NCBI GenBank assembly: GCA_033442325.1
Contig: JAWQFM010000014.1
Span: 262,120-326,119 of the forward strand
From: Salpingoeca rosetta
Lineage: Eukaryota > Protista > Choanoflagellata
Direction: 5' to 3'
DNA length: 64,000 bases
Each line of letters opens with the position of its first letter. Position 1 is the first letter of the stretch. Below are positions 34,331 to 37,300 of the stretch, in pieces. Both the position numbers and the translations under genes were made by a program. The notes beneath the pieces were generated by a model. The model ran no database searches and was not told where the DNA came from. It saw only the letters and a program-made list of their open reading frames with translations.

Positions 34331-37300
34331 CGATGCTGATGCCGCATCACCAGCCAACGCTGATGCCGCTGTTGCTGGCGCTGATGATGACAGGGGCGGC
34401 CGGTCCGCTGCCGTTGGTGCCTGTTGGAAGACGGTGGGAATAGGCATGTGGCCCAGCGGTGGCATCTGCGGCATGACGGGCTCCAGCGCAACGGTGGACG
34501 CAGCCGTGGCCTTTGCATTGGACAGAGCCTTCACGCCATGCAACAGGCTTGCGTTCATGGGTGTCCGAACACGCATCGCCTTGCCCTCCTTGACCACGTG
34601 CCCTGAATGGCGAATGTGTGTGTGTGTGTGTGTGTGTGTGTGTGTGTGTGGGTGTGTGTGTGTGTGTGTGTGTGTGTGTGTGTGTGTGTGTGTGTGTGTG
34701 TGTGTGTGTGCGTACATGAGTTTGGTTGCGAGTTCATCAGTGCGTATGCGTGTGTGCGTGTGTGCAAAACATGTGCGTAATGAGTGCGTGCAAAAGCCAC
34801 CGATGATAAGCATTCCATGAACGAACCAAAACCACACACATCCAACAGTCAACAACGTGCAGCGCAACTAAGACATGCCCCGCCCGACACGACACACACG
34901 CACGGGCATATTTATTCATCTGTACATTACGTGCATGCACGCCTTACTCAAGCACAACGCACCGTTGATGTAGTCGATTTCCGTGGCAACACCCCGCCGC
35001 ACATCCGCAAGCATGGAAGAGAAGTTGGGCGCCGTGTTCCTGAGGACTGTGTGCACCTGATCCAAAGGATCCTCAAACGGAATCACAATCCCTTTGCGCT
35101 CAGCAACAGCCATCACTTCGGCAACAACATCTGCCCACCCATGCAAAAGTATCGAAGTTGGTACGCAGGTACAATCAAACATCACACAAATCATCAGCCA
35201 TCAGAAACAACGTGATGAGCACCACAAAGAGATGTCACTGCGTGAGAGGGAACCAAACTAAAACAGAGAACAAGCTGTCACATCATGTCAGCACACACAC
35301 ACATGCACACATACACACACATGAATTCTCATGCACACACACACTTCTCACTCACTCACGCACACACACAAGAACACACACACACACACAAGCGCACACA
35401 CAAGCACACGCACGAACGCTCACGCCAACACACACACACACCTCCACATGCAAGCACATACACACACTCTCACATGCAAACGCGCACATAGAAACCCCAA
35501 GCAAAGACACCTTCGATGATGGAGAGTGCTTCAGAAGACTCGAGGAGCTGCCCGTTGGGAACATCCATGATTGCCGTGATGGGGTTGATGGCGCAGTTGA
35601 TGAGCAACTTGCCCCACACCACGGAGTTCATGGCGCGCTGGTCGTCAATTTGCTTGCAGGCAAAACCGGCACTTGACAGTAGCGCCGTGACAAGCTGTGC
35701 AGCATGCACGTCGCCACCGCCAGCGATGAGCGTATCGCCGCGACCGGTGTGTACGACCCGACCTGGCCGCTCGATGCGCGCTCCATCCGTGGTGACACCA
35801 GCAACAACCGCGTGGTGGGGCAGCTCTCTGCTCAGGGCCTGGTGGTTGCCCACGCCGTTCTGCAATGTCACCACCACTCCGTTTGGGCGGAGGAGCCGCC
35901 GTGCAACGCGGGCTGCCTGAGGGGTTGTCGCAGACTTTGTCATCACAATCGCCACATCAGCCATTGGCGGCCCACTACAAAGCATGCGTGCAAGCATGCA
36001 TACGTATGTATATGCATATGTGTGAATGCATACGTGTGAATGCATATGTGTGAATGCATGCGTGTGTGTGTGTGTGTGCCGAACGTGAGACGTGGAACGG
36101 AGCAACTGTTCATGTATACACACACAAACACACCATGCAAGCCATGGTATACGCGTACACGAATCGATCGTAAACACACAAACACGCATCACACATGCAC
36201 AAACAAACACACACAACAAACAAACAAACACACACAAACAAACACAAAGTACAAAACACACACACATACACACACAAACACACACAAAACAAGCAAACAC
36301 ACACACACAAACAAGTCCACGTCACAATACACGCATAAGCGTTCACTTGGAAACGTGCCTGAGGGTTTCAGCGTTGAGCACGATAGCTCGAGACGTCACT
36401 GGGTCGGTGTGAGTGGCAGCTGCAGGCGATGCTGTGCCATCCACCAGCTGCACACCACCCTGCCGTTCAATGGCATGAATCTGGTCCTGCCACGACGTCA
36501 CCAGGAACACGCGGTGCGCCAGCGTCTCCCCAAGGCGGGCAGCCAGCAAACTGCCCATGGCTCCGCCACCAATCACGGCAACATTCAAGTCCTCGTGTGC
36601 CAGGTCCGCGTCAACGGTGGCGGACGATGAAGAACCTCTCGAATCGAGGCCACGCGTGCTGCTGTGGTAGGAGCGGCGGCCCTGCTTGCCCGCACCATGG
36701 CCATGGCCCATGCTGCCATTGTTGACAGCCGCCCGCGCACGCTCGACGGCGCTTGCAGCGACAGAAGGCGCCTTCTCCCGGAACGAACTCAGCACCGCGG
36801 ACTTGATGAGAAACGTGTGCTCCTTGGTTGGGAAAGCGCCAGCCTGCACATCTGCGTGAAATGAACGCAGGGCATCGGCGATGATGGCGCCAGCCTGCGC
36901 GTACTGCTTGGAGAACTTGGGCACAAACTTGTCGAACATGCCAACAACGTCGTGAAAGACGAGCACCTGCCCACTGGAGCCGGCGCCTGCGCCTATGCCA
37001 ATGGTCGGGATGCTAAGCTGCTGCGTGATATGCTCCGCAATCTTGCCAGGCACCATCTCCAATACAATGGCGAAGCAGCCAGCCTCCTGCAGGAACATGG
37101 CGTCCTCCAGCAGCTTGAGTGCCGCCGCCTCGCTCCGGCCTTGCACGTGATATCCGCCCATGGCCGATGCCGTCTGGGGCGTGAGGCCAATGTGGCCCAT
37201 GACAGGCACGCCCGCAGCCACGAGACTGGTGACCTGGTCGATGACCGCGGGCGCGTGCACGCCACCCTCCAGTTTCACTGCATCCGCACGGCCCTCCTTG

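Follow-up and report, generated by a model that had tools for sequence, protein, structure and literature searches.

Is the PanB-PanE-PanC fusion of the choanoflagellate Salpingoeca rosetta, a single precursor for three enzymes of pantothenate (vitamin B5) synthesis, cut apart inside mitochondria by MPP (mitochondrial processing peptidase)? The gene lies on the minus strand of a 64,000-nucleotide stretch of contig JAWQFM010000014.1 (the window; all positions below refer to it). A sequence-only reading of the window had noticed a peptide resembling a mitochondrial presequence between PanB and PanE, at 36600-36760, and proposed that it is either an internal cleavage site or a relic of gene fusion. 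The peptide, GSMGHGHGAGKQGRRSYHSSTRGLDSRGSSSS, is indeed coded between the two domains by positions 36717-36622 of the minus strand. Our preferred and tentative reading, rated a little short of an even chance, is that the stretch is a disordered tether joining PanB to PanE within a mitochondrially targeted precursor and contains an internal processing site. The results below support the original proposal in part: the linker bears an MPP-type motif that has statistical backing, keeps its position among relatives and lies where the chain is accessible.

Domain organization and the PanB-PanE linker

Pfam profiles were run on the open reading frames (ORFs) exon by exon. The ORF at 36343-37926 (minus strand) holds an N-terminal extension, PanB, the peptide in question and the start of the PanE Rossmann fold; PanE begins with VAVIGGGAMGS (PF02558) in the same exon as PanB. 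PF02548, PF02558/PF08546 and PF02569 follow one another in this order within one coding sequence, which makes the protein trifunctional. The same families are present in P0121, the annotated S. rosetta protein of 1136 amino acids (aa) retrieved by profile search, which is identical to the exons of the window except for 35 N-terminal residues. Whole-protein analyses were done on P0121, where a residue number equals that in the 1171-residue protein (see below) minus 35. The features that bear on the question are as follows.

33275..37914, minus strand: PanB-PanE-PanC gene, ATG to stop (Pfam on exon ORFs, spliced RNA contigs, residue identity to P0121)
37810..37914, minus strand: predicted N-terminal mitochondrial presequence, residues 1-35, ending VA-R-C-L-S-S (composition, AlphaFold2 helix)
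36826..37626, minus strand: PanB (ketopantoate hydroxymethyltransferase) domain (PF02548, E 1.6e-103, ORF residues 101-367)
36583..36810, minus strand: PanB-PanE junction, 76 aa, composed of the PanB C-terminal helix (LIKSAVLSSFREKAPSVAASAVERARAAV) and then a disordered tether (anchors FPTKEHTF and VAVIGGGAMG; AlphaFold2)
36622..36714, minus strand: disordered linker core, residues 366-396 of P0121, with predicted local distance difference test (pLDDT) below 50 (AlphaFold2; exonic, even RNA coverage)
36667..36678, minus strand: R-R-S-Y, candidate MPP site of the R-2 type, between S and Y (codons, motif p=0.005, same tripeptide as in yeast Arg5,6)
36634..36642, minus strand: S-R-G (followed by SSSS), second and weaker candidate site (MAFFT alignment to SRGYSS of Capsaspora; top of a noisier 18-column matrix)
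34493..36582, minus strand: PanE (ketopantoate reductase) module (PF02558 E 1.3e-18, PF08546 E 7.9e-08 and 5.5e-15, in three exon ORFs)

The structure of P0121 was predicted by AlphaFold2 from a 40-sequence alignment (mean pLDDT 79.9). In P0121 numbering, a helix at 2-16 is followed by disorder up to residue 54 and by a confident PanB barrel closed by the helix 337-365. The pLDDT falls below 50 at 366-396, PanE begins at 401, and a second disordered linker (731-783) precedes PanC, which starts at 788 and contains a disordered Asn/Ser insert at 813-870.

The N-terminus, quoted in the sequence-only reading as similar to the linker, reads MSVVQRGLQVLLRHAAS..VARCLSSTC and resembles a presequence: the predicted helix 2-16, no acidic residue across approximately 100 aa, and R-C-L-S-S. 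The first 35 residues contain 4 Arg and no Asp or Glu, and their helical hydrophobic moment is 0.77. The fusion probably enters the mitochondrial matrix.

Between PanB and PanE the wider peptide context is ...NNGSMGHGHGAGKQGRRSYHSSTRGLDSRGSSSSATVDADLAHEDLN..., in which R413-R414-S415-Y416 (numbered from the ATG at 37914) is coded by 36678-36667 (codons cgc cgc tcc tac). These residues, 378-381 of P0121, lie mid-way in the 31-residue segment that AlphaFold2 predicts to be disordered, and could be accessible to a protease. They show the R-2 pattern with an aromatic residue at +1 (R-S-Y). The 25 residues up to the Tyr include 5 basic and no acidic ones. In a log-odds profile of presequence composition the linker came fourth (z 1.6), after two Asn/Ser-repeat windows and the N-terminus of the protein; contamination by Asn-rich training species put the Asn/Ser repeat on top, and the profile adds weak support.

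Motif statistics

The motif was scored with a position weight matrix (PWM) of 11 columns, whose training set was restricted to N-terminal presequence sites from Pan fusions outside Holozoa. It replaced the 18-column PWM, which was so noisy that it missed this protein's own N-terminal site. Each of 90 dereplicated PanB-PanE linkers was compared with 1000 composition-preserving shuffles of itself. Fifteen of the 90 linkers scored at p<0.05, where 4.5 were expected (binomial P=4e-5). The two top ranks belong to S. infusionum (QQTRSYSTTSPS; TRSYSTT) and Choanoeca perplexa (GSKRQLSTTAVA; KRQLSTT), both with p=0.001. S. rosetta (GKQGRRSYHSSTRG) is third with p=0.005 and best site AGKQGRRSYHSSTRG, followed by P0002 (p=0.010) and Capsaspora (ISRGYSSLAR, p=0.015). 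The PanE-PanC linker of S. rosetta has p=0.38 and no MPP-like motif, and contains 2 Lys and Arg versus 3 Asp and Glu. The PanB-PanE feature is therefore not a mere local style of linkers in this protein.

Regular expressions were counted as well. R.[FYL][SA] is found in 34 of the 51 N-terminal extensions of related fusions, where 8.5 were expected, and is therefore valid as a presequence signature of this fusion family. Across 69 dereplicated PanB-PanE linkers this strict form is not enriched (7 versus 5.8 expected, P=0.35). In the regular-expression test against linker shuffles the linker of Barroeca monosierra was taken as 405 aa instead of 93, which inflated its chance value and made that test conservative; the PWM test used the correct linker.

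The motif in related fusions

PanB-PanE fusions are widespread; we found them in Capsaspora, dictyostelids, Balamuthia, Thecamonas, Diplonema, Acrasis and many metagenomic proteins, and they are also known from Toxoplasma and Perkinsus. Trifunctional PanB-PanE-PanC proteins occur in the choanoflagellates B. monosierra (P0302), S. infusionum (P0228), C. perplexa (P0229) and Stephanoeca diplocostata (P0237), and outside this group in Sappinia and Chromera. The fusion itself is hence not new. Among the matches listed in a representative search (50% clustering) there was no further choanoflagellate species; that search yielded only more examples of PanE-PanC junctions.

An alignment of 130 long proteins was constructed using MAFFT FFT-NS-2. 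In a tree of the PanB and PanE domains, from which the linker was left out, a clade unites S. rosetta with S. infusionum and C. perplexa (SH-aLRT, the Shimodaira-Hasegawa-like approximate likelihood ratio test, 99), and pairwise paths among these craspedid orthologues amount to 1.3-1.4 substitutions per site in the catalytic domains. From the Tyr or Leu of the motif to the first PanE strand there are 29 residues in S. rosetta, 20 in S. infusionum and 22 each in C. perplexa and Capsaspora, although the linkers span 52-101 aa. In two metagenomic Choanoeca relatives [KR]R.LSTTAVAH is retained, with a variable tail after the motif. Since a neutral five-residue motif should not stay in place over 1.3-1.4 substitutions per site, this distance argues for selection on the motif. 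The conservation of RRxY, proposed earlier as a check, is found in part: S. infusionum, C. perplexa and Capsaspora have an MPP-type motif at similar spacing, B. monosierra has an imperfect one, and Stephanoeca and most other fusions have none.

Transcript and locus

Raw reads from two stranded RNA-seq runs, together with two RNA-like contig sets, were mapped on 33100-38200. The segments 38110-36359, 35974-35511, 35130-34962 and 34601-34271 are joined in single contigs (X4 record 2, 2750 nt; X6 record 7), and all three splice junctions are backed by RNA contigs. The remaining features of the gene are listed below.

37914-36359, 35974-35511, 35130-34962 and 34601-33275, minus strand: exons 1 to 4 (RNA contigs)
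36358-35975, minus strand: intron 1, 384 nt, GC..AG on the coding strand
35510-35131, minus strand: intron 2, 380 nt, GT..AG
34961-34602, minus strand: intron 3, 360 nt
34325..34492, minus strand: PanE-PanC linker, rich in Pro, Ala and Ser, not basic (sequence; AlphaFold2 disorder)
33278..34324, minus strand: PanC (pantoate-beta-alanine ligase) module (PF02569, E 2.8e-93)
~34076-34249, minus strand: Asn/Ser repeat insert in the N-terminal loop of PanC (AlphaFold2 disorder; RNA contigs break there)

Counted from the ATG at 37914, the exon lengths add up to 1556 + 464 + 169 + 1327 = 3516 nt, that is, 1171 codons and a stop. By this length arithmetic the reading frame is kept across the exons, and the phases agree with the frames of the Pfam-bearing ORFs. 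All three introns fall within the PanE module. PanB, PanE and the start of exon 4 lie on single contigs, and the PanC part is covered by a second one (33173-34099); the break coincides with a repeat at 34100-34270 that codes for Asn and Ser and is part of the unbroken exon 4 ORF. One spliced transcript thus carries PanB, linker and PanE, and PanC comes next within the same open exon.

RNA coverage of the linker, which is exonic, is even, with no joint, loose end or pile-up of read starts at a depth of only 1-4x. A hidden intron in the linker was considered and ruled out, as RNA contigs run gap-free over 36359-38110.

The public annotation removes 105 nt (37651-37755, minus strand) from P0121 as an intron. 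This segment codes for 35 residues of low complexity, GAGGSGNAQSSSSSPSSSPSPPKASSPSSSASAAP, and is crossed gap-free by RNA contigs of two runs (X4 record 2, X6 record 8). The true length of the protein is therefore probably 1171 aa and not the annotated 1136 aa.

PanB, PanE (ApbA) and PanC each have a single locus, the one described here, in the 55.4-Mb genome. The fusion is therefore the sole S. rosetta source of these three activities. M16 peptidase genes were found in the same genome.

Comparison with known precursors and fusions

Yeast Arg5,6 is cut internally by MPP at R-S-Y (523-525), an R-2 site with an aromatic residue at +1 and predicted trimming by Icp55 (Friedl et al. 2020, PMC8734313). 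The precedent on which the sequence-only reading relied is thus a proven site. A nearby R-G-Y in Arg5,6 is unused, and internal cutting needs a genuine N-terminal presequence (PMC8734313). Both precursors combine consecutive enzymes of the same pathway, start with a presequence-like N-terminus, and carry a presequence-like junction with the R-S-Y tripeptide. Cleavage has been demonstrated for Arg5,6 only, whereas the S. rosetta site is a prediction from sequence. The junction motif is conserved among the Arg5,6 fusion orthologues, and nearly all the fungal fusions have an internal sequence resembling a mitochondrial targeting signal (MTS-like), whereas in Pan fusions the motif is confined to some lineages. 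The pathway and the enzyme folds of Arg5,6 are unrelated to those of the Pan fusion. Internal MPP motifs at the junction of two functional polypeptides, as proposed here, are also present in Atp25, in Rsm22-Cox11 and Etp1 of S. pombe, and in rice SDH2-RPS14. None of these composite precursors, which are likewise cut by MPP, is a vitamin-synthesis enzyme, and none was described from choanoflagellates.

The Pan fusions of alveolates offer a further comparison. KPHMT-KPR of Toxoplasma gondii (PanB-PanE, TGME49_257050) has the same PanB-PanE order as the S. rosetta protein, and its mitochondrial location has been shown. It differs in that the fusion is not split and that PanC (PBAL) is separate and non-mitochondrial, being found in the nucleus (PMC8764084). 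Chromera and Vitrella have trifunctional KPHMT-KPR-PBAL ORFs (PMC8717973) with the same three domains in the same order; the Chromera protein (P0283) was recovered here as a homologue. Its linker of 138 aa lacks the canonical motif and reaches PWM p=0.024 at a site without Arg at -2. The chromerids also keep single-gene copies, whereas S. rosetta has the fusion only. A literature search found no paper that links ketopantoate with the processing peptidase.

Alternative readings

A plain, uncleaved tether is nearly as likely as cleavage. The three enzymes would then stay joined in the matrix, and the basic, hydroxylated and acid-poor make-up of the stretch would be linker composition, possibly an internal MTS-like, Tom70-binding segment that aids import of so long a precursor. 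Several results speak for such a tether and weigh against cleavage. The strict R-3 pattern R.[FYL][SA] fails at the S. rosetta linker, as the residue at +2 is His and not the canonical Ser or Ala; the resemblance to MPP sites claimed earlier thus stands for the R-2 form with its aromatic +1 and for the PWM score, and not for the R-3 form. The tract before RRSY is Gly-rich, with a helical moment of 0.54 versus 0.77 at the N-terminus. Taken on the S. rosetta linker alone, the regular expressions are not significant: shuffles of this linker produce R.[FYL][SAH][ST] in 5% and R.[FY] in 17% of cases. Extended regular expressions are enriched across linkers, but were partly picked after the data had been seen, which leaves the PWM as the one independent test. 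The motif is degenerate in the sister species B. monosierra (SRKCSYNTS, PWM p=0.33, linker of 93 aa): the S-Y-x-[ST]-S core is kept and Arg at -2 is missing. The linker of the acanthoecid Stephanoeca is acidic and motif-free, dictyostelids and short-linker groups show no motif either, and in all about 75 of the 90 PanB-PanE linkers are without one; the fusion can therefore function uncut. In Toxoplasma it is mitochondrial yet unsplit, the C-terminally tagged form running near the predicted full length (PMC8764084), and internal MTS-like sequences, which are common in mitochondrial proteins, need not be cleaved (PMC5881500). Against a mere tether, the PWM value of the S. rosetta linker persists versus composition-preserving shuffles, the motif stays 20-29 aa ahead of PanE in four divergent lineages, and the second linker of the same protein is neither basic nor motif-bearing. 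Tom70 binding, moreover, needs an amphipathic helix and not a cut motif of the type R-x-aromatic-Ser/Thr, and this stretch has a modest helical moment.

Two further explanations start from the Met that stands 15 residues before the Tyr. The linker might be the decaying, now functionless presequence of a once-separate mitochondrial PanE (Met-GHGHGAGKQGRRSY...), the second half of the original proposal. C. perplexa (MALGQGSKRQLSTT) and the related P0021 and P0026 likewise have a Met ahead of the motif, and presequence-like motifs lie just ahead of downstream domains in several fusions. This half of the proposal nevertheless fared worse, and we regard it as improbable. PanB-PanE fusions are present in Amoebozoa, Apusozoa, Discoba, Alveolata and Holozoa, hence the junction is old; a neutral motif would neither survive the divergence that separates the craspedid orthologues nor hold its spacing, and dictyostelid linkers have lost any such feature. 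The same in-frame Met (MGHGHG...) could instead serve as a second start, with an internal promoter or initiation event yielding a separate PanE-PanC with its own short presequence. The low RNA depth leaves room for a minor transcript. Nevertheless, within 36349-37032 the reads (depth 1-4x) show no pile-up of starts, loose ends or coverage step, and contigs run through; many AUGs lie upstream, a Gly-rich leader of 15 aa is a poor import signal, and the Met is missing at that place in both B. monosierra and S. infusionum. A second start is thus very unlikely.

Proposed processing and its implications

Internal cleavage at the linker, giving PanB and PanE-PanC, is the outcome that we prefer, with a likelihood slightly under one half given the sequence evidence. 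We infer import, cleavage and the products as follows. The 1171-aa precursor would be led into the matrix by its N-terminal presequence, which MPP would remove near R-C-L-S-S. The exposed linker would then be cut by MPP between Ser and Tyr of R-S-Y, the Tyr possibly being trimmed by Icp55, and the predicted products are free PanB (~39 kDa) and a bifunctional PanE-PanC (~80 kDa). If the cleavage is real, the protein would add a new member to the tandem precursors processed by MPP, a class already known.

The MPP-split mitochondrial tandem precursors known so far are a handful, most of them from fungi and one from a plant. If choanoflagellates do have a pantothenate polyprotein, it would widen the range of pathways and lineages that use this operon-like trick. 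Cleavage would explain how enzymes that differ in oligomeric state (decameric PanB, monomeric PanE, dimeric PanC) could be fused and still assemble independently. It would also place the whole synthesis of vitamin B5 in the mitochondrion of S. rosetta, whereas the last step is outside it in plants and Toxoplasma. Species with and without junction sites would form a natural series for studying how MPP chooses internal sites. If there is no cleavage, the stretch is an ordinary interdomain linker.

The PanE-PanC junction in other fusions

Motifs of the form R-x-Y/F/L-S-T were observed just upstream of PanC in P0229, P0238, P0306, P0321 and P0236. In C. perplexa the junction (P0229, residues ~700-716) contains KRRYSTH (PWM p=0.001), e.g. 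KRRYSTHTTP just before PanC, which closely resembles N-terminal PanB sites such as RRGYSTH. Other near-perfect sites at this junction, which add to the case for processing of such fusions, are RRKYSTA in P0238 (p=0.001) and YRSLST in Sappinia (p=0.016); RAYST in P0306 and RRFST in P0321 were spotted by eye, outside the PWM ranking. S. rosetta and B. monosierra lack a site here. Judged from these motifs, fusions that carry one may be cut into three enzymes.

Craspedid choanoflagellates in general might make their pantothenate enzymes as MPP-processed polyproteins with a species-specific cutting pattern: S. rosetta and S. infusionum would cut at PanB|PanE, and C. perplexa at both junctions (KRQL|STT and KRRY|STH), giving three enzymes. 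Internal MPP processing would in that case reach a further pathway and the organisms most closely related to animals, and cut sites would be seen to come and go at domain junctions in the course of evolution. We consider this broader scheme rather doubtful.

In P0123, a metagenomic trifunctional protein, there is an internal PRAYSTNA and a near-repeat HAYSTLA without Arg at -2, and almost no extension before PanB. Either this gene model is clipped at its 5' end, or such motifs can occur without mitochondrial import.

Other observations on the gene

The PanC insert of S. rosetta consists of about 58 residues of NSNST... repeats between the first helix and the VGFVPTMG strand; other choanoflagellate orthologues are without the Asn/Ser repeat in PanC. 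For the GC..AG boundary of intron 1 (35975-36358), support comes from 4 raw RNA reads of run X21 and from X4 and X6 contigs. All three introns are rich in (TG)n near the donor and in (CA)n near the acceptor.

In the RNA reads of two runs (29 and 6 reads) there is an "opposite strands" joint 33209/34388, and the reads also show a C>G difference at 34381 and a shared loose end at 34367. These signals probably reflect another transcript or repeat-driven misplacement of reads. At 37698-37728, over a Ser/Pro low-complexity coding stretch, the depth in contig runs spikes up to ~670 with many loose ends; this spike comes from other transcripts with similar simple repeats and is no feature of the Pan gene.

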